Origin: Phaeosaccion multiseriatum
Lineage: Eukaryota > Protista > Ochrophyta, other classes
Direction: 5' to 3'
Assembly: GCA_965112735.1 (NCBI GenBank)
Contig: OZ218953.1
Span: 310,001-374,000 of the forward strand
DNA length: 64,000 nt
Position 1 is the first letter of the stretch; every line of letters begins with the position of its first letter. Shown piece by piece: positions 1 to 53,470 of this stretch. The position numbers and the translations under genes were made by a program. Under the pieces are notes generated by a model. The model was not told where the DNA came from. It saw only the letters and a program-made list of their open reading frames with translations, and did not search any database.

Positions 1-268
1 AGCTTCGAAGATCTACGCGCAAGAGGCAGTCCGCCCGAATCGCGAGCTTGTACGGAGAGAATGACGCCTACCAGGCGCCTCGAACCTTCTCCGACTGCCT
101 CCGTATGCGAGCGCGAGCGTGGAAGAAGGTCAAGGTGAAGACGGGGTACTTTGAAGTGGAGCGGTGGCAACGAGACGAGACGCAGGAGGCGAACCAGCAG
201 CAGCAAGAGGGAGGTGGTATGGGTGCCGGTGGGGAAGCCGCCGCCGCTGCCGCCGCTGCCGCCGCCGC

Positions 269-7662: not shown

Positions 7663-7702
<40 letters not shown>

Positions 7703-22700: not shown

Positions 22701-23330
22701 CCGGGGCCCTTCCACCGCACCAAAGTGGTGTCCCTGACGCCTCGATACGTCATGGTCAACCTGCTGGGGAGAGCCATCGAGGTCAAGCAGGCAGGCGTGC
22801 CCCCCAACCATAGGACCTCCGTACCCAAGGATGGTCAGACGGCCTTCCATTGGTCGGACGGAGGCAGCGCCCGGCAGCTCGAGCTCAGACTGGAGGAGAT
22901 GGGGTGGGACTGGAGTGGGCGCTTCTCTCCGGACGGGCTTGGGGAGGACATTACTCTGCGACTGCGGAACGTCAGCCACGGAATGCTGTTCGTGCGCGTG
23001 GAGGTGGTGCCACAGGGCCCCACTCTCATGGTCGTGTTCCGGAGGGAGCTACCCAACTTCGCCCCCTACCGCATCGAGAACGAGAGCTTCGAGCGCCTCT
23101 CTCTACGACAGGTTGGTGCTTGATGCATCACAGCGGGCCTAGTGTGACCTTGTGTGACTTTGTGTGACCTTGTCTGACCTTGTCTGGCCGCGTGGGGGAA
23201 GGGCTGCGCACGCTCACAGAGAGAGGGCGGCGCACACACGACTTGCAGTTCTTTCTTGCCTGTTCTCTCTCTCTCACACACACCTGCCGTCTTTCTTTTA
23301 CCTCTCGCTGTCTCTCGCTCTCTCCTCTCT

Positions 23331-23364
<34 letters not shown>

Positions 23365-31676: not shown

Positions 31677-32550
31677 AGGACACCAACGACACCGAGCAAA
31701 GCCACAGCGAACAACGAAGCGACAAGTCACCTCAAGCTCCTCTAATCACCAACATCCATCCCAATCACAACGGAATGAATGCCGTCAGCTCAGTACGAGT
31801 ATATATATAAAATAAAGAGAAAAAAGTACAACCCAAATACCATGGCTAGGCCACCAACGTGGACTAGAGAACGACTGCCCCAGCAGTTCCCTACTCATCA
31901 CCAACACCGACCAGAAAGGATGAGTGCCACACACTAGGATGCTACAGCCCCTCTGTAGCACCACCTTGACTTGCTTGTTTACACGCGCCTAGCTCCCCCC
32001 CGCGACAAATCCACATGCTAGTACCCTACGTTATCTTACTTAAGGGGGGCAACTCCACCTTCGCCCTAGACCCCCCTTGCCGGGGCACTCTATGAGGAGG
32101 CAACGCCCAAGCTCCCCTACTACCTACTCACCTATCCACTATCCACTAACTACAAGTATATGAATACGAACCAATAATGAAAGAAACAGGACACCAGCCA
32201 CAGCTAACAACGAAGAGACAAGTCCGAAGACACGCTCCTCTAATCACCAACATCCATCACAATCAGAACGGAATGAATGCCGCCAGCCAGCTCAGTACGA
32301 GAGTGCAAAACCCAGTCAGAGAAAAAAAGGTCTGACAAGGGAAGAACGCAACCCGACCCCCAAAGAATAATGCACTTAAAACAAAAGTACAACCCAAATA
32401 GCATGGCTGAGGCTACCAACGTAGAGAAAGACTGCCCCAGCAGTTCCCTACTCATCACCAACACCCACCAGAAAGGATGAGTGCCACCACACTAGGATGC
32501 TACAGCCCCTCTGTAGCACCACTTGCTTGTTTTCGTGTTCAACACGCGCC
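31677..32550. repeat. Degenerate ~0.5-kb tandem duplication downstream of MACPF gene copy 1 (also ~43765-44475)
   Basis: Blocks such as GCTCCTCTAATCACCAACATCCATC and CTACTCATCACCAACAC..CCAGAAAGGATGAGTGCCAC..CTAGGATGCTACAGCCCCTCTGTAGCACC occur at ~31736/32234 and ~31892/32447, and again after 43800 and 44160. Confidence 0.8.
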
Positions 32551-32719
32551 AACACCCCGCCTCGTCTAGCTAAGCTCCTTCGTACGAGGAATCACGCCCC
32601 AGCAGGTCAGCCGAGTCCAATGGCCGAAGAGAAAGGCGGCGCTTGTTGACGAACCCTTAGCTACTGCTCCGTTGTCGATCGGCCGTGCTCAGCTCTCCAG
32701 TCTCTCGGACTCGATCCCC

Positions 32720-35700
32720 TTACGAGATGGGCATGACTGTCCACTGAATCACCGACTGCTTGTTCACGGGTACACCCTTGACGGCGGCCATCATTGTCTT
32801 ATCCGAGCCGCGGTCCTTAGTGTCCTTCTTATCTGAAACAGACAGGGAGCCAGTCTCGCACGTGAGCGTGATCTGTGGGGCACACCACAGCCATAACATA
32901 GGCGGGTGAGGAAGGGAGGGGGGAGAGTGGAAGAGTGGAGCGGTGGAGGGGGGAGCAACAAGCGCAGGGGCGGAACAAGGTGGAAGGGAGGGAGCGAAGG
33001 AGGGAAGGAGGACGAGGGCGGGGGAGCGGGGGAGCAATTTAGGGAAGGGCAGGGGGGAGAGCAGGGAAAGGAGGGCGGTAGAGGAAGGAGCGAGTGAGGG
33101 GAAGAGAGAGAGAAGGGGGAAGGGGGGAGGGAGGCGGAGAGAAGAGAAAGGGGGTTGATGGCAAGACGGGTAGATCATAACCAAGAGGAATCAAGAGGAT
33201 CTGCTGCACTACTCAAGTGTGTGTCTGAAACTGCTATAGCTAGGGAGGCCAAGAGGAAGAGCAAGGAAGCATGAAAGGAAAGATGCGAAGCGGGCAAGGA
33301 AGGAAGGCTCCAGGCAGGGAAAACTATACACACAAAACAAACACAAAACAGACAGAGACGGTCGGAAGCGAAGGCACACGCACTCACCACGTCGCCGTAG
33401 CGGACACGCGTCTGATGCAGTGTGGGGGTACCTCCGATCGCTCTCTTAACGATGCGGATAGTCCACTTGGTCTTGGTCGCGTATGGCTTGACCATGATCT
33501 TGCCGTCTGGGATCTTGTAGTTGGTTAGATACAAGTTGTCCTTGGGGGCGCACTTGCTCTTGATCCTTTGACGGTGCGGGGCTTGGGCAGTCATGGCTCT
33601 TCCTTTCGGTCGGAGCTGATTTTGGGGGGTAAGCAAACACCGAGCGTTGGGAAGGGCGAACAAGAACGGCCAGTTTCAGTGCCAGCCAGTGCACGGACGG
33701 ATTCATCACACACCCCAAGTCAAGCAAAGACGGGAGAAGAGGGTATCAGCCAAGGTCAACGTCGAGTACTAACTAGCAGGATTGCAGGGCTACAGCCCCC
33801 ATCAGCCAAGCCTGACTTGCTTCATTCACACTCTTTTTCTTACTTTGCTTCCTATAGTGCAGGGTGAAGGGGAGTTCCAGAAATTGCATGCCGGGCACTT
33901 TTTCACTCCCTTACCATGTTCTTAACGAAGACTTCATCTCCGTGCTTGACCCCTCCGACGGTGGTTCCTGGGTTTTGCAGCTGCCATTGCGCCTCAACTT
34001 GCTCATCTTTAGCCGAGGCAACCGCCAAGGTGTCGTAAACAACTTCCTCGTTCTGGAAGGCCCATTTCTCCATTGCTTTCATCTGCCCGACGAACGTCTC
34101 CATTTGCCGAACGACTCCCTTCCCGTGGTTGTTATAGTACCGGTTACCGTTATTTCTGGTCCTCTTTCGGGTAGTCGTCTCGAACTTTCGAAGTCCAATG
34201 AGCCTTTTAGCTCGGGCATCTTACCCTTGGAGCCTAGTCTCCTCCCCTAATATGTAGGGGGGGGGGACGGTGGAGACACGGTGGAGACAACATCATTCAG
34301 CAAGAAGAAGCAAGTTCATGGGAGTTGGAGAGAAGAAGAGAGCGAACGAGAAGGCAGACGCACGTTATCTCACCTGGTCGCTGAAAGCGCGATACGCCGC
34401 CAGTATCTGCGTCTTTGCAGGCCGCAGAACTTGATCCTGTGACCACTTCAAGGTGTAGTAGTGCTGACCGTTCCTATCCTTGAACTTCTGAATGGCCTTC
34501 TCGACAATCTTCTCTCTACTGGCCAGCTGCTCGTCCGTCAGTGAGAAGTATACGGGCACACATTCCACTCAAATGTTAGTATCGTGGTATGGCAAGGAGC
34601 TAGGGATTTTCGAGACGCACAAAATGAGAGATCTGAAACATGTTAGCCTTGTGTCGCCTTGGCCACCACCTTCCTCTCCCCCTCCCCCCTCTCTTCCCTT
34701 TCTTTACTAAAGGAAATGATGACTTCTTTCAAAAACGAAATGATGAAACCATCGGGGCTCTGTGAAATCATCGCCATCGAGTCTCCTCCTGACTGAACTG
34801 AACTTCCTTTTCTCTAAGGCTCTACGGAGCAAACTTACCGGCACAGACCGGTCGTAGCGAGTGCGGACGGCAGAGTCAAGCAATTCCTTGGTTCCGACGC
34901 TCTCGAGGCTGAGGAGCGAGTGGTAGCCGTCGAACTGCAGCTCCGGGTGTTTTGCCCGCGTCGCGGCGTCTCCGAGGAAAAGATCCAGAAGGTATGGGGG
35001 TGCGTCCCTCTTGAAGCGCTCGGCCAGATCTGTCCAGTTGCCGTAGGAGAGGTCTTCACTCAGCTTCTTCACCTGCAGGACGGACTCGTCCTTGGCGACG
35101 TCAAGGCCGTCGATGAGATTAAAGTCGGTGGCGGCGTCCGTGAATCCGTCAAAAAACAGGTCGTTCCAGTTCTTGACGCTCAAGGGCTCCAGCTCGCTCA
35201 TATCTACGCAGCTCTTGACAGCGGCCTTCACTACGCTCGCGACGAAGGCTTCCTTCTTGGCGTCACCGTCGTCGCCTATTGGGGTGGGGCGGGGTCCAGC
35301 CAGGCACAGGCACAGAGAAAGGCGACGGGTGAGCTGCTACGCACATTTCCCCTGAGGTTGATTCTTACTTTGTTCATGATAGCACCCTTCTCACACACAT
35401 TAAGCACTTGAACGACCATCTCCCATTTGTGTGCTACGCAAAATACGCCGCCTTCTGGTGCCTTTCCGTGTTCGTTCTTGTCGCGGAGATGAAATCGACA
35501 ACAGGGGCGCGGAACGCTCCGACCGGCTGAAGTGTGTGTGTATATGTATGTGACTGTGGCCATCAATGGTGCGATGAGCTATGACCGCAGCAATACCAAG
35601 TGGGACACACACCCTTGCCTTAGCGAGAAGCTCGTGAGAATTGCCATCCTCCTTGCCTGAACATACCTTCCCAGTCGCCTGACTCGGCCGGCTTGGCCAC

Positions 35701-38700
35701 GACGAAGCAGAGCTCGCGCACGATCGTATCGAACGACTGCTCCACGAAGAGGGCACTCCTCACGAGTGTCCGTAGACTCGCAGAGGTGTCGGGGTTGCCC
35801 AGTAGCAGCGGTTGCCACACTCGAGCTCGCTGCTCCCAAGCCCTGGGCATACAGATGATCGTCAATACGGACCGGTATGGAAGGGGGGGTGAGATGCAAA
35901 GGTTCGTCAGTTTAGGGGGAGAGAGGCCGGCCGCCGCAGGCACTGCACGCGTACATGTGCGCTTCCGCAAAACTTCTGCCATCGTACTACGTACGCTTGC
36001 TCGCTTCTCTCTTACCTGTGGATAAGTAGAGCCGCGTTCTTGTATTCCTCGTCCACATCACTGATGACCTCCAGAAGGTCCCAGACAGGCACGAGAGCCT
36101 CTGCAGCCAGCCAGAGCAAAAGAAGGAGAGGGGAAGGGGGCAAGCAACAGGGAGGACACAGCCACAGCGATCGGGGGAGGGGGGTTGTGAGGATAAAATG
36201 CAGCTGCGACACACCACCCCCTGCCTAGCTACGCTACAGTACTTCCCTCTCCCTCCCTCACTCACTCACTCACTCACTCACTCACTCCCTCACTCTTTCC
36301 CTCTACTACAACACTCCTTCTGTCTCCCTCCCTCTTCACCCAGCCAGCCACTCTCACTCACCCAACGGGCCCCTGTCAATGCATGACCATGATCGGGTGT
36401 TCTGCAGCAGCTCCTCACCGAAGCCGTCCACTGAGGCAGCGTTTGGACCGAGTGACTGAGCGAGAGAGAAAAAATGAATGAAGGGGGGGGGGAGGGGGGT
36501 TGATGAGGATGTGCTGGTGTCTTCAAGTCTAACATGAACTGGGCTTCCTGCCCTCTCTCTCTTGCTATTTTACGTACTCACCTTGACCGTGGTCTCGAAG
36601 AAAGCCGTCTCCTCGCGTTCGTCTGTGTTCTCTCCCGTCGCGTTGGTCTTGAACTTCACCTTGGAGGTCTCTGTGCTTTTGCTGAAGTTGGCGCCAAACC
36701 CTCCACTGAGACTGAAACCCTTGATGCCTAAGCCTCCGCCCAAGCCCAGACTGTTTGGAAAAGACAAAAACACGTGTTGATTGTCATCGGGGGGAGTTGT
36801 CGTACAGGAGTTGGGTTGTTGGGTGCAGCCGGCCGGGTCATATCAAATGTGAGTGAAGCAAGAGAGGGCACATGTCTTGACAAGTTTGTTTCTTGTTCAA
36901 TAAAAAGGGACAATCGTAGCTACCCCGTACAACCTGTCAGCCTCTCACACCCCCCCCCCCCCCAAACTCACTCACTGACTCACCCCACGGCTTTCGACTT
37001 GCCCTTGGTGTTGCTGTTGTGCTCGCCGGCCTCTGCAAAAAGTTGCTCCGTGGAGACTGCTTTCTTGGAGCTCATGGTGGTGGTGCGGAAGAACACCCCT
37101 CCCAGCAAGTGCCTTCCCATAGAGACATCTGCAAAGGGAAGTGGAGGGGGGAAGGGGGTCGCACCCGAGGAGAGGCAGGGGTGGAGGAAGGAGGGAGAGA
37201 GAGGGAGCGAAAAGGGGCGAAAGAAGGGAGGGAGACGCGGAGGAGGCGAGTGTCAGAGTGTCAGAGTGGTCCTTTACTAGGGGCTCTTCCCCCGATACGG
37301 CCTCACTTACCATAAAAAAACAGCGACGGAAGTCAAAGCAATTGGCAAAGCAAGGCAAGCAAGGCAAAAGCAAGGGCGGAGGATGTAACTTACGTGAGCC
37401 GAACATGTCAAGGAACGCCTTGGCCTTGAGCGTGGTGTCGACCTCTTTGGCGTATTTCTTGGCCTCTTCCGTCAGCTTCATCTGGTCTCGCGGAATACGG
37501 AAGGTCCGCATGGGGCACTTGACATACTCCAGAATGATCGCCGTTTTGGCGAGGCCCTGTCTGGCCAACTCCTTGGTCTCTCTCTCTTGTTCCGCCTTGA
37601 CCTTTTCCTTTTGTCGTGTGTTACCCCCCCCTTTCGTCCCAGTCCCCGCCGCGCCAGGGCCACCAGGAAGAAGGCCAGGCTTCGTAAATGATGCCGACCC
37701 TCCCTTGGAAAGCCCAAACGACGTGACGCTGCTTTCGGCCACGGAAACTCCCGCAGAGGAGACGGTGCTGATGAAACTGCTCGCAGCTGATTCCTCAGTG
37801 GTCTTGAAGACGCGGCTTTCCAACCCGGTGTCGGGCCCCGTCCTGTGGTAACAGTGGTTGGTTGCAGGAGAGAAATAGGGGGCGAGCGAGAGGATGGAGG
37901 TCTAGCGAGTGACGTAGTAGGTTGAACACCATACAACAACAACAACAACAACAAAAACAACGAACAGACTCGTCCTTCCCCTCCACAGGCAGCCAGCGCC
38001 ATACTTACATTTCAACGAAGGTTGGTTTCTGCAGGAGCGGAGCGTAGGGGCGTTGGGCGATGGTGCCGTCGTCGAGGTCGCCAAAGAAGGACACACCGTA
38101 CAGAGCGATGCCCCCCGAAGCTCCAGCCACGAGATCTTCGTTGTTCTCATACGACTTCAGCACCCCGTTTCCGGTGGGGAAGGACAGAGCAGACTGGGCT
38201 TCAGCCTCTGCGAGCAGGCGCGCCGACCCTGCAAGAAAGAGGGGTGGAACAAGAAAGAACAAGAAGAGGTGGGAAGCGAGGCGAGGCGTGTGTCGGAGGG
38301 ATGGAAATGGATTCAAGCTTTCTTGGAACATCAGGCAGGGGGTTTTCCTAGTTCGGGCAAGACAAGGTGCGTTGTTCCGACGCATAGCTAGCTGGGCTTT
38401 GAACACTCGGGCCGCTCCTTCATCTCCCACCCACCTTGCAAATTGGCCTTCCAGTCCGCAGGCGGCTGTGCTGCCTGCCTGACCTCGTCGAGGCGCTGCG
38501 CCAACTCGTCCTCGCTCTTGTTCACGAGGTCCTGCAGGAGTCCATTGTATTGTTGGGGGATCATGTCAGAGTGAGGCGTGGGACAACCAATCGCAACGAG
38601 AACAGGTCAGGCCAGGGTACAGCCACCCATCCATCACACTCCAGCCACCAACCTTCCACTTTTACCGAGGCACTGCCCGTTCGTGCCGTTAGCCAAAGGC

Positions 38701-39251
38701 CAAGAGGTTAGAGGTCTTAGCCTGTGTTACAGCCATGCACGCCCCCTTATTCTACTGGCTGGACTGCTGCATGCAAACATAAATACATGGAGAAGAACAC
38801 TCCCGCTTCTTCGGCCGCTGATCCCTATCTCCCCCCCCTCCCCCCCCCCCCCCTCTCTTCCTCTTGCTTCTTCCTAGTCTTCTTTCCTTCCCAACAAAAC
38901 AAGAGCAAGGTAACATTTCCCTCTCCTTCCTAATTTCCTCTTACTTCTCTTGACTTACTTTGGTGTTGAGTTTGTCGAGCGCCGCTTGGGTCTTGTCGGC
39001 ATAGGCCTGAGCCTGCTTGACATGAGACGCCAGTTCACCCGCCGCAAAATTGGTTGGAGACTTTGGAAAAAGAATCCCAAGCGCACGCGAGAACGCTTCT
39101 GAAGCGGCAGGGCTTGATAGCAGACCCCCTAGCAGACCCCCAGGCGCACTGCTTTGTGCAGGCGGGGCAGCACCGCCGGGCCTGCTTCCGTTGTTTTGCA
39201 TCGCTTGGAGCTTGGCTCCCAGAATCCGGCTGCTGTTGGTGGTGGTGGTGG

Positions 39252-39318
<67 letters not shown>

Positions 39319-41047
39319 GGTGATGGTGGTCTCCTTCGTGACGATGGTTCGGACGTGCTCGCTAATGTCCGCGGCTTTGAACACTTTGAGCCCTTCCAGA
39401 ACCTCGGATAGCTCCATGCTCAAACCTTCGGGGCATGGAAGAGAAAGGGAGGAAGTAAGTGGCTGAGGGAGTGAGAAACCAAGGGAGTGAGCGACGGGGT
39501 GAGAGATGACTAAAAGTGAGAGAATGACTACATTAGTGGGCTGGACGAGAGAATGAGTGCGCACTGGTTGGAGGGGCGGGTTGGAATGGGGAGGAGAGAG
39601 AGATGTTCAGCTGTATACGATAATAACCGTGGCGCTTGCGACTCAGTCTCACCGTTGGCAAGTAGCTCTGAGCGAATGGCCGGGACTCCCGGCGCGGACG
39701 GCTCTGCGAACAGCTCCTTGATGAGCTGCGGGGAGAGAGAGAGAGAGACAGAGAGACAAGAGTGAGAGAGAGAGAAAAGGAGGTGAGAAACATGTGCGAA
39801 CGAGGTAAGGACTACTTAGACTAGGACCGAGTGACGTCTACCAGCATCGAACCAGAGAGGTTCTTACGCGCTGTGCATTAGCTTCATACATCTCAGAGTC
39901 ACAGAACCCTACCTACCTCGCGATCACTGGGTCCTGCAACTACGGCGGTGTTGTCCTCGCCCTCCTCATCGTATTCCTCGTCTTCTTCATCGGAGCCTTC
40001 ATCGTCGTCAAAATCCCCCTCCTCTTCTTCTCCTTCGGCTTCTTCTCCTTCGCTTTCCTTTCCCTCGTCCACCTCCGCATCTCCTTCCTGCGAGTCGTTG
40101 CCATCATCTAGCAGCAAGTCGGAACCGAGCAGGTCGTTGATGGCACTCCACTGCATGTGCTGCAGCTCCGTGACAGTCTTGACCTTGCTTAGCAAGTCCC
40201 TTGCCCACGCAGCGTTCACATTCACCCCTGCACAGGGTGTGGGGGGTAAGGGAAGTGAGGAAGCAAGTGAGGGAAGGAGGGAGTGTGTGAGTGGGCAAGT
40301 TAGACCAGTGAGTTGAGTTAAGCGAGTGGGAGAGTGAGTGAGTGAGTGAGTGAGTGAGTGAGTGAGTGAGTAATGAAGTGAAGCAGCTAAGGAGTGAGTG
40401 AGCCGCTTTGACGTACCACGGCTGAGGAGTGCACCTCTGAGCTGCAGCTCTCTTCCCAGAAGCAGGGTGACATCGTCCATCGCATCGTCCTTCTCGTCGG
40501 CTTTGTCGTCGTCGGAGATGGTCGGGACATCCAAGACACCTGCTCCACCACCGGGACAGCGAAACACAGAGGGGAGGAGCATGAGGTGCGGTTTTTCTTC
40601 AGGGTAGGCAGTAGGGTAGGTCTGCTCTGGCTGCCTTGGCTGTTGCTCACCTTGCTTCTTTAGGCCGTGCAGGTACACCGCAATGGCAGCGTTGTCTAGC
40701 GTGGCTAGGCCCATCTTCACCAAGACCAAACTCATGTCCTGGCCGACCTCGCCACGCTTTAGAATAGCCAGCAATGGGGGGGCCAGGGCCTCGTCCGCAA
40801 GCTTCTGGAGAGCAAAGCGGGAGGAGAGGCTAGCCGGCTTTACAGCAGCGACAGCCTCCTCCTCTCCAGCCGCAGCGGCGGGGGCACCAGAAGCAGCAAT
40901 AGCATACTCTTTCTTCTTTCTCTCGTCCTCTGCTTGTAGCAGCCCACGCAAACATCCCAAAACGAATCTCCTCTTTTCGGCCCCGCTAAGGCCGGCGCTT
41001 AGGGTCTCGATCTCCTTCACAGCAGCACTCACTGGATCCTCAGCCAT
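32720..41047 (-). CDS. GVIN1-like MACPF pore-forming domain protein with C-terminal beta-trefoil/MIR-like region, copy 1 (18 exons; 1-nt frameshift at ~34187)
   Basis: Spliced motifs ASGGIALYG, MTGPDTG, PMRTFRIPRDQMKLTEEA, FLDMFGSH|VSMGRHLLGGVFF, SLGP..WSCIDRGPL|EALVPVWDLL; C-terminal WQLQ..VKHGDEVF.KN and WTI..VRYGDVITL repeats. The junctions checked are GT-AG with consistent phase; exon 33915-34246 is 332 nt vs 333 nt in copy 2. Confidence 0.8.
39239..39329 (-). repeat. Coding (AAC)n/(ACC)n microsatellite: poly-Asn (~22) plus poly-Thr
   Basis: (TTG)n on the + strand; only 4 Asn at the equivalent site in copy 2 (~51217-51228). Confidence 0.9.
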
Positions 41048-42599
41048 CGTAGCCATAGACTAGCGGTGCGGCGGCAACGGTGTATGTGTGAGGTGTGTGA
41101 GGGACAAAATGGACCAAGATCTTCTTCACTTCTCCTTTCAGGCAGGCGGCATCACTTACAAGCAAGCAACTGGCTGGGTGAAGGGCGGTCCGTGACCAAA
41201 CTCGTTGAGCACCGACAACAGCAGCACCGGCGTTGAGAGAGCACAGAAGGGCGTGTGCTTTAGGGAGTGATGGAGTTACGGTGGGGGGTGGGGGGGGGGG
41301 ATTGGGGAAATCAAAAGGGGGGTATCCATTTTCTTTTCTTCCTTCAAATGCCGTGTAACTGCTGTAGATTCGGACCTACTGAAACTGAAACTGAAACTGA
41401 ATTATCCCCCCGCGGAGAGAGAGAGCGGAGAGGTGTGTATTTCCGGAGGAGCGGGAGACACTTTGCTTTGTCGACCCAAGTTGACCTGTCCGTCGCCCCC
41501 GCCCCGGTTTTTTCGTATTTCGCTGATGCCCCCTGTTTGCGCGCTCCATTAAACATTCCAGCAGCAGTAATGGCTTAGTGAAGGGTTGCTCATGGCAGGA
41601 AGGTGGCAGGGCTGGTAGTAGCAGCAGCAGTCAAGCAAAGAGAGGTACATTTCAAACCACCACACCACCAGCAGCAGCAGAGACAAATGGAGGAGAATGA
41701 AGAAGCTGTAGCGGGGCAGCACAAAAGGATGGAACAGCACCACCTGTGTGACAGTCCTGAAGAGATTTCTGGCGCACAGGGCTCTGAGAATACGAGTGGA
41801 AAGGCCACAGGAGCGCATGACGACGATGACAGTGATTGGGACGACGAGAGTTGGACGCAAGCCGTTGCTCTGGCAGATGAAGCCGCTGCGGCGGTAGTAT
41901 AACCAGCGACCGCTTCGAAACAGGGCACTCAAGCGGCAGTGGAGACTGAGTTTGCGACAATTGCCGCAGCACAGGAGGAGACGCGGTGAAACAATTGCAG
42001 ACAGCTAAGCAGAGATTGAAAATCGAGAAGGGGGGCTGTAGAAGATGCTTACGAGGAGGACGAGGCCGGCCCCTGAAGGGAATAAGCGAGAAGCTGCGTT
42101 GAATGGTGCAGCTAGGAAAGGAATTGATGAGGATTTGCTTCTCCCAGCGGAGAAGGAAGAGAAGCGAAAGAAGGACATGGAGGAGAGGAAAAGAAGGGCT
42201 GTGACTTGTATTCGAGCGCAGACAGGGTAGATGGTGCAAGTGGTGACCACTTCGTAGGGTTTTCTTCGCCGCCCCTTGGTTGCACGTCTAAGCGGTACGT
42301 TCTCAATGATTCTCCTCTTCCTTCTTGATGCCTGGCTGCTCTTGTCCACGCCCCCCGCCCACTCTGGGCCGCCCTTTCTGAACATACCTTGACACACTTA
42401 TTCCCAGTTGTTCTCGCCCCCTTTTTACATCTTTTTTTGTGCTAACAGGGGTGAGAAAGACGAGGATGAGGACGAGGAGGATGGAAATACGGGCGACAAG
42501 GGGGGGCGGTGGTGGTGGGGGAGGGTTTGGGAAGAAGAATAGACCACCAGCGCAGACTGAGTTCATCTAAGTAGCACTCGAGGCGGCAAGGGATCCAAA

Positions 42600-42825
42600 G
42601 GAAGGGTTGCCTACCTGGCAAACTCCCTACTACAGGGCCTCGACGCCAAGCCGCCAGTCTGAAGTGGGAGGGTATGCCCAACGTGACGTGTTTGTCTGGG
42701 CCCCCCACCTCTTCCACAACCTTGAAGAGTACCACCAGCAGCCTCTTTGCGCATGGGATGCATCGTCAGAGTGTGTACAAGCTAATGGGTGGACGTCGCC
42801 GCAGCGGGCTGTGTCTGTCACCATC
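42600..42825 (+). pseudogene. Possible transposon-associated domain remnant (DUF6729-like) in the inter-duplicate spacer
   Basis: RDVFVWAPHLFH..PLCAW..CVQANGWTSPQRAV resembles the F.W.P..CP..GW..PRRV pattern of DUF6729-type element proteins as remembered; it breaks into low-complexity GGA repeats. Confidence 0.3.
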
Positions 42826-43764
42826 CTCGAGCAGGAGGAGGAGGAGGAGGAGGGGAGGGAGGGAAGAGGGGGAGGGGGAGGAGGAGGAGGAGGACCATCA
42901 TCATCAGCAGCAAGAGAATCACAAGGAGGAGGAGGAGGAGGAGGAGGAGGAGGAGGAGGAGGAGGAGGAGGGGGGGGAGCAGGAGGAGAATCAGCTGTGG
43001 GAGGAGGAGGAGGAGCAACAGCAGGAGTAGGAGTAGCAGGTGGTGCTGGTGCTGGAGGAGACGGGGGGGGGGGGGAGGAGGAGGAAGAGTTGCAGGTGCT
43101 GCTGAGGCTGGAGAAGGAGGGGGGGAAGGAGGAGGGGGAGGAGCAGCAGCAGCAGCAGCCGCCGCAGCACTGTGGCCGGCACGGGGAGGATCAGGGGCAG
43201 GAGCATCTGTAGCGCCTGCAGAGGCTGCTGCTGCAGAGGGTGTCGCTTTCGGGGGAGGTGAGAGTATCCACGAGAGGCAGCTATGGAAGAGGACGGAGGC
43301 CGCGAAAAGGAGAAGAAGAGAGGCAGGCGAGGAGGGAAAGGAGAAGGCGAGGCACCTGAAAAAGGCAGCGCGGGAAAGGGAAAGATTACAGCAGGATGAG
43401 GACGGGCCAGAGGGTGATTTACCCGTTTCCGTGTGCATAGTATTGTATATACAACACTTAGGTAATCTACAGTTGCCTCTACTCTGTGGAGGAGAAGGAG
43501 AGAGTCGACAGAGAGGGGTGGCGCCGCAGGCCGGGAAAATTTCTAATTTCTTTTTTTTCTCCTTTTTTGGGCCGGCGGTCGACGTTAATAAGTGTGTGTA
43601 CCCAGTTTCCCAACTTCGCACGTGCTCTACGTTCGGGATTCCCGGTCCTCAATCGGTTCGGGAAAACGATTGAGGAAAGGGATTTGGCTGGGAAAGAAAT
43701 CGCAGACACCCCAATGCAAAAGAAAGAAATTATTTTTTTTTTTTTTTTTTAAATAAAAAAAAAT

Positions 43765-46700
43765 AAAGTACAACCCAAATAGCAGGGTTGAGGCTAGGCC
43801 TACTCATCACCAACACCCACCAGAAAGGATGAGTGCCACCACACTAGGATGCTACGGCCCCTCTGTAGCACATACACACACACACACACCACTTGCTTGT
43901 TCCACACGCGCCTAGCTACCCCCCGCGACAAATCCACTTACCAATCCTACCTTATCTTACTTAAGGGGGGCAACTCCACCTTCACCCTAGACCCCCCTTG
44001 CCGGGGCACTCTATGAGGAGGCAACGCCCAACCTCCCCTTCTCCCCGTACCCACTAACTACAAGTATATGAATATGAACCAATAATGAAAGAAACAGGAC
44101 ACCAACGACACCGAGCAAAGCCACAGCTAGCAACGAAGAGACAACAAGTCCGAAGACACGCTCCTCTAATCACCAACATCCATCACAATCACACAACTGA
44201 ATGAATGCCGCCAGCTCAGTACGAGAGTGCAAAACCCAGTCAGAGAAAAAAAAGGTCTGACAAAGGGAAGAACGCAACCCGACCCCCAAAAGAATAATGC
44301 ACTTAAAACAAAAGTACAACCCAAATAGCATGGCTGAGGCTACCAACGTAGAGAAAGACTGCCCCAGCAGTTCCCTACTCATCACCAACACCCACCAGAA
44401 AGGATGAGTGCCACCACACTAGGATGCTACAGCCCCTCTGTAGCACCACTTGCTTGTTTTCGTGTTCAACACGCACCAACACCCCGCCTCGTCTAGCTAA
44501 GCTCCTTCGTACGAGGAATCACGCCCCAACAGGTCAGCCGAGTCCAATGGCCGAAAAGAAAGGCGCCGCTTGTTGACGAACCCTTAGCTACTGCTCCGTT
44601 GTCGATCGGCCGTGCTCAGCTCTCCAGTCTCTCGGACTCGATCCCCTTACGAGATGGGCATGACTGTCCACTGAATCACCGACTGCTTGTTCACGGGTAC
44701 ACCCTTGACGGTGGCCATCATTGTCTTACCCGAGCCGCGGTCCTTAGTGTCCTTCTTATCTGAAACAGACAGGGAGCCAGTCTCGCACGTGAGCGTGATC
44801 TGTGGGGCACACCACAGCCATAACATAGGCGAGCGAAGGAAGGGAGGGGGGAGAGTGGAGCGGTGGAGGGGGGGAGCAACAAGGCGCAGGGGCGGAACAA
44901 GGTGGAAGGGAGGGAGCGAAGGAGGACGAGGGCGGGGGAGCGGGGGAGCAATTTAGGGAGCAGGGAAAGGAGGGCGGTAGAGGAAGGAGCGGGGGGGGGG
45001 GGGGAGGAGCGAGTGAGGGGAAGAGAGGGAGAAGGGGGAAGGGGGGGAGGGAGGCGGAGAGCAGAGAAAGGGGGTTGATGGCAAGACGGGTAGATCATAA
45101 CCAAGAGGAATCAAGAGGATCTGCTGCACTACTCAGATGGCCCCAACGGTGTGATTCTGAAACTGGTATAGCTAGGTACTAGGCCAAGAGGAAGAGCAAG
45201 GAAGCATGAAAGGAAAGATGCGAAGCGGGCAAGGAAGGAAGGCTCAAGGCAGGGAAAACTATACACACAAAACAAAGACAAAACAAACAGAGACGGTCGG
45301 AAGCGAAGGCACACGCACTCACCACGTCGCCGTAGCGGACACGCGTCTGATGCGGTGTGGGGGTACCTCCGATCGCTCTCTTAACGATGCGGATGGTCCA
45401 CTTGGTCCTGTTCGCGTATGGCTTGACCATGATCTTGCCGTCTGGGATCTTGTAGTTGGTTAGATACAAGTTGTCCTTGGGGGCGCACTTGCTCTTGATC
45501 CTTTGACGGTGCGGGGCTTGGGCAGTCATGGCTTTTCCTTTCGGTCGGAGCTGATTTTGGGGGGTAAGCAAACACCGAGCGTTGGGAAGGGCGAACAAGA
45601 ACGGCCAGTTTCAGTGCCAGCCAGTGCACGGCCGGATTCATCACACACCCCAAGTTAAGCAAAGACGGGGGAAGAGGGTATCAGCCAAGGTCAACGTAGA
45701 GTACTAACTAGCAGGATTGCAGGGCTACAGCCCCCATCAGCCAAGCCTGACTTGCTTCATTCGCGCTCTTTTTCTTACTTTGCTTCCTATAGTGCAGGGT
45801 GAAGGGGAGTTCCAGAATTTGCATGCCGGGCACTGTTCCACTCCCTTACCTTGTTCTTAAGGAAGACTTCATCTCCGTGCTTGACCCCTCCGACGGTGGT
45901 TCCTGGGTTTTGCAGCTGCCATTGCGCCTCAACTTGCTCATCTTTAGCCGAGGCAACCGCGAAGGTGTCGTAAACAACTTCCTCGTTCTGGAAGGCCCAT
46001 TTCTCCATTGCTTTCAACTGCGGGATGAACGTCTCCATTTGCCGAACGACTCCCGCCCCCTTGTTGTTAAAATACCGCTTTCCTTTATTTCTGTTCTTCT
46101 TTCGAGTAGTCTTCTCGAACTTATCGAAGTCCAATGAGCCTTTTAGCTCGGGCATCTTACCCGTGGAGCCTAGTCTCCTCCCCTAATATTGTATTTCGGG
46201 GTCACGGTGGAGACACGGTGGAGACAACATCATTCAGACGGTGGAGACAACATCATTCAGCAAGAAGAAGCAAGTTCAGAGTTGGAGAGAAGAAGAGAGC
46301 GAACGAGAAGGCAGACGCAAGTTATCTCACCTGGTCGCGCAAAGCGCGATACTTCGCCCCTATCTCCTTCTTTAAAGGCCACAGAACTTGTTCCCGTTTG
46401 CGGTCCAAGGTGTAGTAGTGGCTGCGGCCTCTATCCTTGAACTTCAGAATGGCCTTTTCGACAATCTTGTCATCTCTACTGGCCAGCTGCTCGTCCGTCA
46501 GTGAGAAGTACACAATCGTGGTATGAGGGATATTCGAGAGGCATGAATGAGAGATCTGAAACATGATAGCCTTGTGTCGCCTTGGCCAACCCGTTCCTCT
46601 CCCCCTCCCCCCTCTCTTCCCTTTCTTTCCTATAAAAGGAAATGATGACTTCTTTCAAAAACGAAATGATGAAACCATCGGAGCTTGTGAATCTGATTGA

Positions 46701-49700
46701 ACTGAACTTCCTTTCCTCGAAGGCTCTACGGAGCAAACTTACCCACAGAGACCGGTCGTGGCGAGTGCGGAAGGCAGAGTCAAGCACTTTTTCGCTTCCG
46801 ACGCTCTCGAGGCTGAAGAGCGAGCTGTCGCCGTCGTGCTGCAGCTCCGGGTGGTTTGCCCGCGTCGCGGCGTCTCCGAGGAAAAGATCCAGAAGGTATG
46901 GGGGTGCGTCCCTCTTGAAGCGCTCGGCCAGATCTGTCCAGTTGCCGTAGGAGAGGTCTTCACTCAGCTTCTTCACCTGCAGGACGGACTCGTCCTTGGC
47001 CACGTCAAGGCCGTCGATGAGATCAAAGTCGGTGGCGGCGTCCCTGAATCCGTCAAAAAACAGGTCGTTCCAGTTCGTGACGCTCAAGGGCTCCAGCTCG
47101 CTCATATCCTCGCAGCTCTTCACAGCGGCCTTCACTACGCTCGCAACGAAGGCTTCCTTCTTGGCGTCACCGTCGTCGCCTATTGGGGTGGGGCGGGGTC
47201 CAGCCAGGCACAGGCACAGAGGAAGGAGAGGTTTGATTCTTGCTTTGTTCATGATAGCACTTGAACGACCTCGTCCCTTGCCACACACAATAAGTACTTG
47301 AACGACCATCTCCCACTTGTGTGCTACGCAAAAGACGCTGCCTTATTGTGCCTTTCCGTGTTCGTTTTTGTCGCGGAGACCAAATCGACAACAAGGGCGC
47401 GGAACGCTCCGACCGGCTGAAGTGTGTGTGTATGTGACCGCGGCCATCAATGGTGCGATGAGCTATGACCGCAGCAATACCAAGTGGGACACACACCCTT
47501 GCCTTAGCGAGAAGCTCGTGGGACACACACACCCTTGCCTTAGCGAGAAGCTCGTGAGAATTGCCATCCTCCTTGCCTGAACATACCTTCCCAGTCGCCT
47601 GACTCGGCCGGCTTGGCCACGACGAAGCAGAGCTCGCGCACGATCGTATCGAACGACTGCTCCACGAAGAGGGCACTCCTCACGAGTGTCCGTAGACTCG
47701 CAGAGGTATCGGGGTCGCCCAGTAGCAGCGGTTGCCACACTCGAGCTCGCTGCTCCCAAGCCCTGGGCATATAGATGATCGTCAATACCACCGGTATGGA
47801 AACGGGGGTGAGATGCAAAGGTTCGTCAGTTTAGGGGGAGAGAGGCCGGCCGCCGCAGGCACTGCACGCGTACGTGCGCTTCCGCAAAACTTCTGCCATC
47901 ATACTACGTACGCTTGCTCGCTTCTCTCTTACCTGCGGATAAGTTGAGCCGCGTTCTTGTACTCCTCGTCCACATCACTCATGACCTCCAGGAGGTCCCA
48001 GACAGGCACGAGAGCCTCTGCAGCCAGCCAGAGCAAAAGAAGGAGAGGGGGAGGGGGCAAGCAAGAGGGAGGACACAGCCACAGTGATCGGGGGAGGGGG
48101 GTTGTGAGGATAAAATGCAGCTGCGACACACCACCCCCTGCCCAGCTACGCTACAGTCCATCCCTCTCCCTCCCTCCCTCCCTCATTCACTCACTCCCTC
48201 ACTCTTTCCCTCTACTACTACACTCCTTCCGTCTCCCTCCCTCCTCACCCAGCCAGCCACTCTCACTCACCCAACGGGCCCCTGTCAATGCATGACCATG
48301 ATCGGGTGTTCTGAAGCAGCTCCTCACCGAAGCCGTCCACTGAGGCAGCGTTTGGACCGAGTGACTGAGCGAGAGAGAAAAAATGAATGAAGGGGGGGGG
48401 GGGGATTGATGAGGATGTGCTGGTGTCTTCAAGTCTAACATGAGCTGGGCTTCCTGCCCTCTCTCTCTTGCTCCTTTACGTACTCACCTTGACCGTGGTC
48501 TCGAAGAAAGCCGTCTCCTCGCGTTCGTCTGTGTTCTCTCCCGTCGCGTTGGTCTTGAACTTCACCTTGGAAGTCTCTGTGCTTTTGCTGAAGTTGGCGC
48601 CAAACCCTCCACTGATACCGAGACCCTTGATGCTTAAGCTTCCGCCCAAGCCCAGACTGTTTGGAAAAGACAAAAACACGTGTTGATTGTCATCGGGGGG
48701 AGTTGTCGTACAGGAGTTGGCTTGTTGGGTTTAGCCGGCCGGGTCATATCAAATGTGAGTGAAGCAAGAGAGGGCACATGTCTTGACAAGTTTGTTTCTT
48801 GTTCAATAAAAAGGGACAATCGTAGCTACCCCGCACACTGTCAGCCTCTCACCCCCCCCCCCAAAACTCACTCACTAACTCACCCCACGGCTTTCGACTT
48901 GCCCTTGGTGTTGCTGTTATGCTCGCCCGCCTCTGCAAAAAGTTGCTCCGTGGAGACTGCTTTCTTGGAGCTCATGGTGGTGGTGCGGAAGAACACCCCT
49001 CCCAGCAAGTGCCTTCCCATAGAGACATCTGCAAAGGGAAGTGGAGGGGGGAAGCGGGTCGCACCCGAGGAGAGGCAGGGGGTGGAGGAAGGAGGGAGAG
49101 AGAGGGAGCGAAAAGGTGCGAAAGAAGGGAGGGAGACGCGGAGGAGGCGAGTGTCAGAGTGTCAGAGTGGTCCTTTACTAGGGGCTCTTCCCCCGATACG
49201 GCCTCACTTACCATAAAAAAACAGCGACGGAAGTCAAAGCAAAGCAAGGCAAGCAAGGCAAAAGCAAGGGCGGAGGATGTAACTTACGTGAGCCGAACAT
49301 GTCAAGGAACGCCTTGGCCTTGAGCGTGGTGTCGACCTCTTTGGCGTATTTCTTGGCCTCTTCCGTCAGCTTCATCTGGTCTCGCGGAATACGGAAGGTC
49401 CGCATGGGGCACTTGACATACTCCAGAATGATCGCCGTTTTGGCGAGGCCCTGTCTGGCCAACTCCTTGGTCTCTTTCTCTTGTTCCGCCTTGACCTTTT
49501 CCTTTTGTCGTGTGTTACCCCCCCCTTTCGTCCCAGTCCCCGCCGCGGCAGGGCCACCAGGAGGGCCAGGCTTCGTAAATGATGCCGACCCTCCCTTGGA
49601 AAGCCCAAACGACGTGACGCTGCTTTCGGCTACGGACACTCCCGCAGAGGAGACGGTGCTGATGAAACTGCTCGCAGCTGATTCCTCAGTGGTCTTGAAG

Positions 49701-51791
49701 ACGCGGCTTTCCAACCCGGTGTCGGGCCCCGTCCTGTGGTAACAGTGGTTGGTTGCAGGAGAGAAATAGGGGGCGAGCGAGAGGATGGAGGTCTAGCGAG
49801 TGACGTAGGTTGAGCACCATACAACAACAACGACATCAACAACAACAAAAACAGCAACAACAGCAGCAACAACAACAAAAACAACAACAGCAACAACGAA
49901 CAGACTCGCCCTTCCCCTCCCCAGCCAGCCAGCGCCATACTTACATTTCAACGAAGGTTGGCTTCTGCAGGAGCGGAGCGTAGGGGCGTTGGGCGATGGT
50001 GCCGTCGTCGAGGTCGCCAAAGAAGGACACACCGTACAGAGCGATGCCCCCCGAAGCTCCAGCCACGAGATCTTCGTTGTTCTCATACGACTTCAGCACC
50101 CCGTTTCCGGTGGGGAAGGACAGAGCAGACTGGGCTTCAGCCTCTGCGAGCAGGCGCGCCGACCCTGCAAGAAAGAGGGGTGGAACAAGAAAGAACAAGA
50201 AGAGGTGGGAAGCGAGGCGAGGCGTGTGTCGGAGGGATGGAAATGGATTCAAGCTTTCTTGGAACATCAGGCAGGGGGTTTTCCTAGTTCGGGCAAGACA
50301 AGGTGCGTTGTTCCGACGCATAGCTAGCTGGGCTTTGAACACTCGGGCCGCTCCTTCATCTCCCACCCACCTTGCAAATTGGCCTTCCAGTCCGCAGGCG
50401 GCTGTGCTGCCTGCCTGACCTCGTCGAGGCGCTGCGCCAACTCGTCCTCGCTCTTGTTCACGAGGTCCTGCAGGAGTCCATTGTATTGTTGGGGGATCAT
50501 GTCAGAGTGAGGCGTGGGACAACCAATCGCAACAAGAACAGGTCAGGCCAGGGTACAGCCACCCATCCATCACACTCCAGCCACCACCCTTCCACTTCTA
50601 CCGAGGCACTGCCCGTTCGTGCCGTAAGCCAAAGGCCAAGAGGTTAGAGGTCTTAGCCTGCCTGTGTTACAGCCATGCACGCCCCCTTATTCTACTGGCT
50701 GGACTGCTGCATGCAAACATAAATACACGGAGAAGAACACTCCCACTTCTTCCGCCGCTGATCCCTATCTCCCCCCACTCCCCCCCCCCCCTCTCTCTTC
50801 CTCTTCTTCCTAGTCTTCTTTCCTTCCCAACAAAACAAGAGCAAGGTAACATTTCCCTCTCCTGCCTGGTGTGATAAACGCCGAGTCAGTAGGCCGGCAA
50901 CCTACACCTCTTACTTCTCTTGACTTACTTTGGTGTTGAGTTTGTCGAGCGCCGCTTGGGTCTTGTCGGCATAGGCCTGGGCCTGCTGGACGTGAGACGC
51001 CATTGTATCCGCCGCAATATTGGCTTGAGACTTTGGCAAGTATTTCCCAAGCGCACGCGAGAACGCGCCTGAAGCGGCAGGGCTTGATATGAGACCCCCA
51101 AGCGCACTGCTTATGCCGCCAGCACGAGGCGGGGCAGCACCGCCGGGCCTGCTTCCGTTGTTTTGCATCGCTTGGAGCTTGGCTCCAAGAAGCCGGCTGC
51201 TGTTGGTGGTGGTGGTGTTGTTGTTGTTCGTGGTGATGGTGGTCTCCTTCGTGACGATGGTTCGGACGTGCTCGCTAATGTCCGCGGCTTTGAACACTTT
51301 GAGCCCTTCCAGAACCTCGGATAGCTCCATGCTCAAACCTTCGGGGCATGGAAGAGAAAGGGAGGAAGTAAGTGGCTGAGGGAGTGAGAAACCAAGCAAG
51401 GGAGTGAGCGACGGGGTGAGAGAGTACGTGAGGGAGTGAGAAACCAAGCTAGGGAGTAAGCGACGGGGTGAGAGAGTGACTAACAGTGAGGGAGTGAGTG
51501 AGTGAGTGAATGGGTGAGTGAGGAAGGAGTGAGTGACTGGGTGGGTGGGTGAGTGACAGAATGGTGATTTTTCTGAGCTACATTAGTGGGCTGAACAAGA
51601 GAATGAGTGCGCACTGGTTGTGGGGGCGGGTTGGAATGGGGAAGAGAGGAGATGTTCAGCTGTATACGATAATAACCGTGGCGCTTGCAACCCTCCCTGC
51701 CTCAGTCTCACCGTTGGCAAGTAGCTCTGAGCGAATGGCCGGGACTCCCGGCGCGGACGGCTCTGCAAATAGCTCCTTGATGAGCTGCGGG

Positions 51792-51823
<32 letters not shown>

Positions 51824-53470
51824 CAGAGAGACAGAGTGAGAGAGAGAGAAAAGGAGGTGAAAAACATGTGCGAACGAGGTAAGGACTACTTAGACTAGGA
51901 CCGAGTGACGTCTACCAGCATCGAACCAAAGAGGTTATTATACTCTTTAGCTTCATACTTCTCGGATTCCAGAACCCTACCTTACCTCGCGATCACTGGG
52001 TCCTGCAACTACGGCGGTGTCGTCCTCGCCCTCCTCATCGTCTTCCTCGTCTTCTTCATCGGAGCCTTCATCCTCGTCAAAATCCCCCTCCTCTTCTTCT
52101 CCTTCGGCTTCTTCTCCTTCGCTTTCCTTTCCCTCGTCCACCTCCGCATCTCCTTCCTGCGAGTCGTTGCCATCATCTAGCAGCAAGTCGGAACCGAGCA
52201 GGTCGTTGATGGCACTCCACTGCATGTGCTGCAGCTCCGTGATAGTCTTGACCTTGCTTAGCAAGTCCCTTGCCCACGCAGCGCTCACATTCACCCCTGC
52301 ACAGAGTGTGGTGAGTATAGTGAGGAAGCAAGTGAGGGAAGGAGGGAGTGTGTGAGTGGGCAAGTTAGACTAGTGAGTTGAGTTAAGCGAGTGGGAGAGT
52401 GAGTGAGTGAGTGAGTGAGTAATGATGTGAAGCAGCTAAAGAGTGAGGGAGCCGCTTTGACGTACCACGGCTGAGGAGTGCACCTCTGAGCTGCAGCTCT
52501 CTTCCCAGAAGCAGGGTGAGATCGTCCATCGCGTCGTCCTTCTCGTCCGCTTTGTCGTCGTCGGAGATGGCGGGGACATCCAAGACACCTGCTCCACCAC
52601 CGGGACAGCGAAACGCAGAGGGGAGGAGCATGCATGAGGTGCGGTTTTTCTTCAAGGTAGGGTGGGGTTAGTTGCTCACCTTGCTGCTTTAGGCCGTGCA
52701 GGTACACCGCAATGGCAGCGTTGTCTAGCGTGGCTAGGCCCATCTTCACCAAGACCAAACTCTTGTTCTGGCCGACCTCGGCACGCTTTAGAATAGCCAG
52801 CAATGGGGGGGCCAGGGCCTCGTCCGCAAGCTTCTGGAGAGCAAAGCGGGAGGAGAGGCTATGTGCCGGCTTTACAGCAGCGACAGCCTCCTCCTCTCCA
52901 GCCGAAGCGGCGGGGGCACCAGAAGCAGCAATAGCATACTCTTTCTTCTTTCTCTCGTCTTCAGCTTGTAGCAGCTCACTCAAACATCCCAAAACGAATC
53001 TCCTCTTTTCGGCCCCGCGAAGGCCGGCGCTTAAAGTCTCGATCTCCTTCACAGCAGCACTCACTGGATCCTCAGCCATCGTAGCATAGACTAGCGGTGC
53101 GGCGGCGGCGGTGTATGTGTGAGGTGTGTGAAAAGCAAAGGGGGTATCTTCAATTTTCGCTCACTTCTCCTTCTCTCAGGCAGGCCCTTTAAACCCCCTT
53201 CAACAAAGCAAGCAACGAAAGGCCGTCCGTGACCAAACTCGTTGAGCACCGACTACAGCAGCACCGGCGTTGAGAGAGCACAGAAGGGCGCTGTGCTTTA
53301 GGGAGTGATGGAGTGATGGGAAGGAAGAGGGGGGGGAAGGGGTAATTTCCTTTCCCCCCCCCAACTGCCAAAACTGCGATAATCATACAACTATTTTTGT
53401 TGGGGGGTAAAGATCTAACATTTTTTTTTTGTAACTGCATCGCTGTAGATTCCTACTGAAACTGAAACTA
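43765..53470. repeat. Segmental duplication copy 2 (~9.7 kb)
   Basis: Starts after a poly-T/A tract (AAAGTACAACCCAAATA shared with ~31824); last shared block GCTGTAGATTC..CCTACTGAAACTGAAACT at ~41361-41392 and ~53442-53469. Confidence 0.95.
44647..53079 (-). CDS. GVIN1-like MACPF pore-forming domain protein with C-terminal beta-trefoil/MIR-like region, copy 2 (18 exons, apparently intact)
   Basis: Same exon chain as copy 1; ATG 53079 (MAEDPVSAAVKEIETL); MACPF core exons ~47933-50164; exon 45850-46182 is in frame; TAA at 44647-44649. Confidence 0.82.

Follow-up and report, generated by a model that had tools for sequence, protein, structure and literature searches.

The 64-kb window analysed here (contig "C4"; OZ218953.1, positions 310,001 to 374,000) comes from the 67-Mb, 22-contig assembly of a stramenopile alga, Phaeosaccion multiseriatum. 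It carries two tandem, apparently intact paralogous genes, copies A and B, each predicted to encode a protein of ~1,340 amino acids (aa) with a central perforin-type (MACPF) domain. That both products are MACPF proteins without a GTPase domain or a signal peptide, and belong to a subfamily whose domain heads VLIG-type GTPases in other organisms, is well supported. Because the same core is found at the front of these giant immune-type GTPases, the gene pair may encode a cell-internal defence or death protein.

The gene models on which the analysis was based are listed below, with positions counted from the first letter of the window.
Copy A, 41047..32720, minus strand: predicted gene, 18 exons, 1,348 aa; canonical splice sites, frame kept in A, B and an unconstrained paralogue on contig C10
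Copy A, exons 1-9, minus strand: 41047-40651, 40539-40417, 40227-39917, 39725-39653, 39425-38959, 38531-38435, 38228-38009, 37842-37394, 37128-36984
Copy A, exons 10-18, minus strand: 36750-36582, 36455-36362, 36100-36016, 35842-35667, 35275-34839, 34526-34374, 34184-33915, 33615-33388, 32872-32720
Copy B, 53079..44647, minus strand: predicted gene, 18 exons, 1,330 aa, 92.5% aa identity to A; projected through a three-way alignment
Copy B, exons 1-9, minus strand: 53079-52680, 52588-52466, 52296-51986, 51784-51712, 51338-50929, 50467-50371, 50164-49945, 49733-49288, 49028-48884
Copy B, exons 10-18, minus strand: 48656-48488, 48364-48271, 48017-47933, 47762-47587, 47179-46743, 46486-46331, 46119-45850, 45550-45323, 44799-44647

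The models were obtained by dynamic programming, in which codon log-odds were scored against the local intron composition and both copies were forced to stay open and in frame, and were then refined by hand. Each copy ends in a single TAA. The joins within the core were read by eye and are all canonical, with GTAAGT, GTGAGT or GTAAGA donors and CAG acceptors; they restore the strings TFVE/M/TGPDTG, FLDMFGS/H/VSMGRHLLGG, KAVG/LGLGGG, ETTVK/SLGPN and IDRGPL/E/ALVPVWDLL, where a slash marks an exon joint. When five public relatives were compared by tblastn, the matches fell exactly on the core exons of both copies. The C10 paralogue (G000:C10:345706-353762), which had placed no constraint on the model, keeps an open frame along the projected model as far as the shared TAA (1,332 aa, 76% aa identity), and the indels that separate it from the window copies are multiples of three in 18 of 19 cases in exons against 25 of 95 in introns. 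Copy A has two in-frame ATGs (MATMAEDP) at 41056 and 41047. The first of these is destroyed in copy B by a 1-bp deletion (53079-53088), so both copies probably start at the second ATG.

Several alternative models were rejected. The first model, which maximised coding length, was discarded because it had absorbed open intronic frames. Three pieces of the codon-scored model were regarded as artefacts: a 21-nt exon at 38751-38731, which the C10 copy lacks, a second mini-exon of 8 nt at 33851-33844, and an additional terminal exon at 32565-32448. The simpler 18-exon model was retained because of the conserved acceptor at 33615 and the shared TAA at 32722-32720. Intronic (AGTG)n/(CTCA)n microsatellites at 40307-40371, 36249-36303, 51485-51556 and 52372-52420 read open as 'THSLTHSL' and inflate the mechanical open reading frames (ORFs) of this region.

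The MACPF core occupies six exons in each copy, and its placement by the family hidden Markov model (HMM) was as follows.
Copy A, 36016..38228, minus strand: predicted MACPF core, six exons, ~aa 490-875; family HMM E 1.6e-87 over profile positions 1-294 of 299, and tblastn
Copy B, 47933..50164, minus strand: predicted MACPF core, six exons; family HMM E 4.6e-88

After splicing, the core of copy A reads ASGGIALYG, a Ser/Gly-rich region in the position of the first transmembrane hairpin (TMH1), CPMRTFRIP, FLDMFGS/HVSMGRHLLGG, a Gly-rich TMH2 region, SLGPN and WSCIDRGPL/EALVPVWDLL. Pfam searches on single exons gave no relevant match, only sub-threshold chance matches on two N-terminal ORFs, since the domain is spread over several exons and its flanks are lineage-specific. 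A profile of the largest core exon was therefore built from eight paralogous loci of the same genome and searched against 1.84 billion representative proteins, which returned 94 matches. They include proteins of Ectocarpus (CBJ28670.1), Cladosiphon, the diatoms Pseudo-nitzschia and Ditylum, Phytophthora, Saprolegnia, Achlya, Thraustotheca and a liverwort, and further those of Artemia, a jellyfish, rotifers and Pelomyxa. In a 32-member alignment and profile of the whole domain (A2, ~300 positions), the conserved columns are a nearly invariant S.G in ASGG.ALYG, the F of FRIP, F..F.SH........GG, GP and W..ID; across the family the G-G pair is invariant and S-H nearly so. Pfam MACPF (PF01823) was matched by 13 of the 32 members at E<=1 (best E 1.8e-8), and its cut-off of 21.5 bits is exceeded by Ectocarpus P0002 (domain 26.7 bits, second score 24.5), P0107 (25.1 bits) and P0007 (22.6 bits).

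Fold tests were run on AlphaFold models of two relatives, Ectocarpus P0002:216-565 and the N-domain of jellyfish P0067. The AlphaFold2 model of P0002:216-565 had a predicted local distance difference test score (pLDDT) of 79.7 and a predicted template modelling score (pTM) of 0.78. It contains long strands at 143-161, 201-221, 264-277 and 284-298, and low-confidence helical or disordered clusters at 74-140 and 222-262, where TMH1 and TMH2 are expected; the bent four-stranded central beta-sheet with two flanking helical clusters is present in the relatives' models. Foldseek against the PDB returned MACPF proteins throughout the top ranks, with pleurotolysin B first (E 3e-8), followed by C9, GNIP1Aa, BT_3439, Mpf2Ba1, perforin, Plu-MACPF, TgPLP1, C8 alpha and MPEG1. 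VIA-align gave Z 13.7 to pleurotolysin B, ~10 to MPEG1, C8 alpha and perforin, and ~5 to cholesterol-dependent cytolysins. Similarly, the model of the jellyfish VLIG N-terminal domain (pLDDT 81.1) matches MACPF structures, with Z 14.2 to pleurotolysin B. The top 41 PDB entries for the relatives' models are all MACPF proteins, and the neighbours in ESM Atlas feature and shape searches are MACPF as well. The relatives' predicted fold is shared with the MACPF superfamily (pleurotolysin B, MPEG1, C8 alpha/C9, perforin), and the F-G-S-H...G-G motif and the Gly hinge are conserved across the family. The window proteins differ from that superfamily in having no signal peptide or membrane anchor and no C2, MABP, TSP, LDLa or EGF accessory domains, and in that the core is set between unrelated N- and C-terminal regions in a protein of ~1,340 aa.

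These results bear on a preliminary description of the window that had been made from its letters alone. It had proposed 18 exons per copy and proteins of ~1,350 aa between 32720 and 53079, and the rebuilt models of 1,348 and 1,330 aa have the same ends. All motifs that it listed are present in the spliced core, and the introns do split the key ones, the FGS/H..GG signature of copy A being broken at 37394/37128. Its assignment to the MACPF family agrees with the A2 profile (E ~1e-87), the relatives' Pfam MACPF matches and the Foldseek and VIA-align results, and the bent four-stranded sheet with two TMH clusters that it predicted was found in the relatives' models.

The same domain is found in giant GTPases. 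In four proteins (Saprolegnia P0048, Pelomyxa P0057, jellyfish P0067, Artemia P0085), it is followed after 600-1,000 residues by a URGCP-like GTPase domain (Pfam E 4e-42 to 9e-54). Giant rotifer proteins with the same domain have precomputed URGCP matches, and precomputed Pfam MACPF matches exist on a Pelomyxa protein and a coral protein. The single A2 profile matches both the window proteins and the N-termini of P0048, P0057, P0067, P0085, P0033 and P0090 with E 1e-87 to 1e-122, and the motifs ASGG.ALYG, FRIP, FGSHVS.G..H.GG and W..IDRG....LVPVWE are common to the VLIG/URGCP N-terminal domain and the window core. On these comparisons, the occurrence of the domain N-terminal of VLIG/URGCP-type GTPases outside vertebrates is real. 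The MACPF domain belongs to a distinct eukaryotic subfamily, whose partners are C-terminal lectin-type domains in brown algae and diatoms, and the VLIG/URGCP GTPase in oomycetes, an amoebozoan, cnidarians, rotifers and a crustacean.

Unlike the VLIG/URGCP GTPases, the window genes have neither the GTPase domain nor anything that lies downstream of it, and they fall in a separate, well-supported clade. No Pfam match to the URGCP-like GTPase (PF25683) was found in any window exon, and the C-terminal 495 aa of the unrefined codon-scored model did not resemble any of the fetched VLIG proteins. A maximum-likelihood tree places the window proteins in a clade with 100/100 support, together with brown-alga and diatom proteins and three metagenome-derived rows; none of the clade members checked has a GTPase domain. 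As they have no GTPase domain, the window genes are not members of the GTPase family and share only its N-terminal domain. Two GTPase-less relatives have been named after GVIN1 by annotators (Symbiodinium 'GVINP1', Thraustotheca 'GVIN1-like'), and similarity to GVIN1 through the MACPF domain would best explain these names. No vertebrate protein was returned by searches with the Saprolegnia and Pelomyxa domains, which gave only close relatives, or with P0003, which did not retrieve the window's own protein either; since these searches were word- and length-limited, the blanks say little. The suggestion in the preliminary description that the core is a GVIN1/VLIG N-terminal domain therefore stands in part: it holds for VLIG/URGCP giants outside vertebrates and agrees with the automatic GVIN1-like names, and vertebrate GVIN1 itself was not reached by the word-limited searches. 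Its description of the pair as GTPase-less was confirmed, and its reading of the proteins as cytosolic agrees with the absence of a signal peptide and of transmembrane segments.

It has been reported that the human GVIN1 gene is intronless with three ORFs, and that the product of the 1,808-aa ORF coats cytosolic Burkholderia (10.1101/2025.03.24.645074). In that preprint the N-terminal domain is joined by a flexible linker, and MACPF is unmentioned (10.1101/2025.03.24.645074). In the paper library searched, nothing ties GVIN, GVIN1, VLIG or URGCP to MACPF or perforin, coincidence aside. Several relatives are already auto-annotated in UniProt as 'MACPF domain-containing protein', and the new elements are the cytosolic modular architecture and the link with giant GTPases, which is undiscussed in the papers searched.

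Outside the core, each protein is predicted to consist of a helical and acidic N-terminal region and a lineage-specific C-terminal region that contains a fast-evolving patch.
Copy A, 38435..41047, minus strand: predicted N-terminal region, ~490 aa; phmmer and hydropathy scan
Copy A, 32720..35842, minus strand: predicted C-terminal region, ~470 aa, fold not assigned; Pfam, homologue and genomic searches
Copy A, 34011..35051, minus strand: fast-evolving patch, ~aa 1011-1190 (copy B ~45946-46955); A versus B ratio of nonsynonymous to synonymous substitution rates (dN/dS)

By phmmer, the N-terminal region of copy A has two helical modules in common with the Jacalin-bearing relative P0003 (E 2.7e-11) and with Ectocarpus P0002 (E 1.1e-7). 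It also carries a long acidic run and a poly-Asn tract. The tract is encoded in exon 5 by an in-frame (AAC)n repeat, with 22 Asn in copy A (39234-39319) and 4 in copy B (51218 region), a 54-nt indel, and no run in the C10 paralogue; it is a coding microsatellite whose length varies between paralogues. By hydropathy scan, A, B and the C10 paralogue all lack a signal peptide and any transmembrane segment (maximum 19-residue hydropathy 1.5), and the N-termini of the relatives are likewise not signal-like.

The C-terminal region occurs in three genomic copies only, namely A, B and the C10 paralogue. It gave no Pfam match per exon, no homologue among the fetched proteins and no usable neighbour in two ESM Atlas queries. 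An impression of a beta-trefoil lectin, raised by QxW-like motifs, was not supported, as hhalign against the lectin-bearing C-termini of relatives was blank. The closest named relatives are Ectocarpus siliculosus CBJ28670.1 (P0002; UniProt D7FI44, 'Bulb-type lectin domain-containing protein') and Cladosiphon g9426.t1 (P0005). They share with the window proteins the N-terminal helical modules and the MACPF core, for which tblastn gave identities over the first three core exons of 35-61% with P0002 and 31-54% with P0005. However, the C-termini differ, P0002 having a bulb-type lectin where the window proteins have the ~470-aa region limited to three paralogues of this genome. Among the relatives, the C-terminal position is taken by Jacalin, Ricin-B, F5/8-C/fucolectin or bulb lectin domains, or by a giant GTPase. 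With such varied domains in one position, the C-terminus looks like an exchangeable targeting or sensing module.

The two genes arose by a tandem duplication with a period of ~11.9 kb, as the preliminary description had supposed. When the two halves of the locus were compared by blastn, 32001-41276 aligned with 43924-53314 in eight blocks of 88-97% identity.
32001..41276, no strand: duplication unit 1; blastn partner 43924-53314
43924..53314, no strand: duplication unit 2; blastn partner 32001-41276
41277..43923, no strand: spacer between the units, ~2.6 kb, unduplicated; blastn

The middle of the unit (35600-38931 against 47518-50867) is 96-97.5% identical including the introns, whereas the flanks are 88-92% identical, which suggests a recent gene-conversion tract over the MACPF core of both copies. 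The core is under purifying selection in both copies, with an A versus B dN/dS of 0.35. The C-terminal patch, in contrast to the rest of the gene (Fisher test p=0.0012), has 57 nonsynonymous and 8 synonymous changes between A and B, a dN/dS of 2.1 that departs from neutrality at p=0.03. The whole-gene dN/dS is 0.86 between A and B. Between A and the C10 paralogue, exons differ more (14.8%) than introns (11.6%), the surplus of changes being concentrated in the two TMH-type hairpin regions and in the C-terminal part. The earlier view of the copies as 'diversifying' is thus borne out for the C-terminal patch (dN/dS ~2) and not for the conserved MACPF core.

In the whole genome, ~11 loci carry the MACPF domain (two on C4, three on C10, four on C1, and one each on C3 and C12). 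More distant family members, with ~40% identity in the core exon, also lie in tandem clusters, at C10:359067-359498 and 368490-368921, beside the close paralogue, and at C1:6575605-6610704. The duplication, the patchy divergence and the ~11 family loci together fit an arms-race gene family. The spacer of the window locus contains GAG/GGA-rich repeats at 42829-43142 (~68 triplets plus a 56-bp repeat). Elsewhere in the window, a giant VPS13-like lipid-transfer gene occupies roughly 7-26 kb of the plus strand (7014-26094), with long open frames and VPS13_N and VPS13_C Pfam matches, and a 609-aa ORF at 61159-62988 on the minus strand has three hnRNP-Q acidic-domain matches (E 7e-38).

It is proposed that the window proteins are cytosolic sensor-executioners in defence or cell death, a reading to which we give about an even chance. 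The protein would wait in the cytosol until its variable C-terminal part engages a ligand, foreign or danger-associated, that is displayed by a membrane-bound target. Ligand binding would concentrate or release the MACPF domain, which would then oligomerise, and the two Ser/Gly-rich helical clusters would unfurl into beta-hairpins and perforate the target membrane. This membrane could belong to an intracellular pathogen or to a pathogen-containing compartment; it could also be one of the cell's own membranes, in which case cell death would follow. Gasdermins and MLKL provide a functional analogy only, as cytosolic pore-formers that are restrained until a trigger arrives; their folds are unrelated, and no cleavage or phosphorylation switch was identified in the window proteins.

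Several points weigh against the sensor-executioner proposal. The MACPF status of the window proteins derives from close family membership and from the Pfam and fold evidence of their relatives. Their signature, F-G-S-H-V-S-M-G-R-H-L-L-G-G (F-G-S-H-V-x7-G-G), departs from [YW]-G-[TS]-H-[FY]-x(6)-G-G by having F and V for the aromatics and a spacing longer by one residue. Identity with the solved MACPFs at the sequence level amounts to no more than 8-16%, and the A2 profile found nothing among PDB sequences at E<=10, so the relationship to the solved structures is remote. Only four public runs, from a single study, were found to contain this DNA. All of them are DNA-like, show no splice joints and cover the introns evenly over 35250-41150. 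The whole-gene dN/dS against the C10 paralogue, about 1 to 1.1, could mean relaxed constraint and not an arms race. The adjoining genes are of a housekeeping kind (the VPS13-like giant, the hnRNP-Q-like protein and a GOST 7TM protein). Lectin-plus-MACPF layouts are typical of toxins that hit foreign cells from outside, and to our knowledge none of the subfamily's members has a known ligand, target membrane or pore activity.

The main rival is that the proteins are stored toxins against grazers or competitors. Such a toxin would be kept in the cytoplasm and would hit foreign membranes only after cell breakage, ingestion or unconventional secretion, its C-terminal domain binding a target-cell surface molecule, in the manner of the fungal pleurotolysin B/aegerolysin systems and nucleocytoplasmic defence lectins. 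This would agree with the best structural matches, pleurotolysin B and the insecticidal MACPF toxins GNIP1Aa and Mpf2Ba1, and with the C-terminal lectins of relatives (Jacalin, Ricin-B, F5/8-C, bulb lectin), the usual layout of toxins that bind foreign glycans. However, the fusion of the domain subfamily to cytosolic giant GTPases argues for intracellular action, no aegerolysin-like partner was seen beside the genes, and the C-terminal domain of the window proteins is not a recognised lectin. We consider the toxin explanation unlikely, though deserving of serious attention. A non-lytic role in signalling, in trafficking or in the control of development, of the kind suggested for plant CAD1/NSL1, astrotactins and BRINPs, is distinctly improbable. 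Many MACPF proteins are not known to be lytic, the window proteins have an atypical signature motif, and Astrotactin-2 is among the structural matches (Z ~8), all of which would suit such a role. Against it stand the two TMH-type clusters, which are long, rich in Ser/Gly/Thr and conserved in position across the family, and the invariant Gly-Gly and Gly-Pro hinge columns; moreover, multi-copy, fast-evolving families are unusual among developmental regulators.

Finally, the pair could be young duplicates drifting towards loss, with the near-neutral dN/dS (0.86 overall for A versus B, ~1.1 for A versus C10) reflecting relaxed constraint. The loss of the first ATG in copy B and the lack of splice joints in the public DNA-like runs could be read in the same way. 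Yet ~1,340 codons stay open in three paralogues up to a shared stop, the exonic indels keep the frame far more often than the intronic ones, splice sites are conserved in both window copies, and the MACPF core has the low A versus B dN/dS given above, so that decay appears very improbable. A wider form of the sensor-executioner proposal, in which the window proteins have this role and their MACPF subfamily is in addition the ancestral effector module of GVIN/VLIG GTPases, is also rather unlikely in our estimate.

The best-known MACPF proteins, such as complement, perforin and perforin-2, are killers that are secreted or lumenal. In contrast, the perforin-type domain described here lies in large proteins without secretion signals, and its subfamily is fused to the giant GTPases that have GVIN1 as their human member. 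If the wider proposal were true, perforin-type pores formed inside the cell, and directed by a lectin-like domain or a GTPase coat, would count as an old defence of eukaryotes that reaches from algae to animals, and the GVIN-type GTPases of animals might deliver pores, or might once have done so. An active domain would provide a testable effector mechanism for a poorly understood GTPase family, and a candidate cell-autonomous immune or death executor for the algae related to brown algae, whose molecular immunity is almost unknown.

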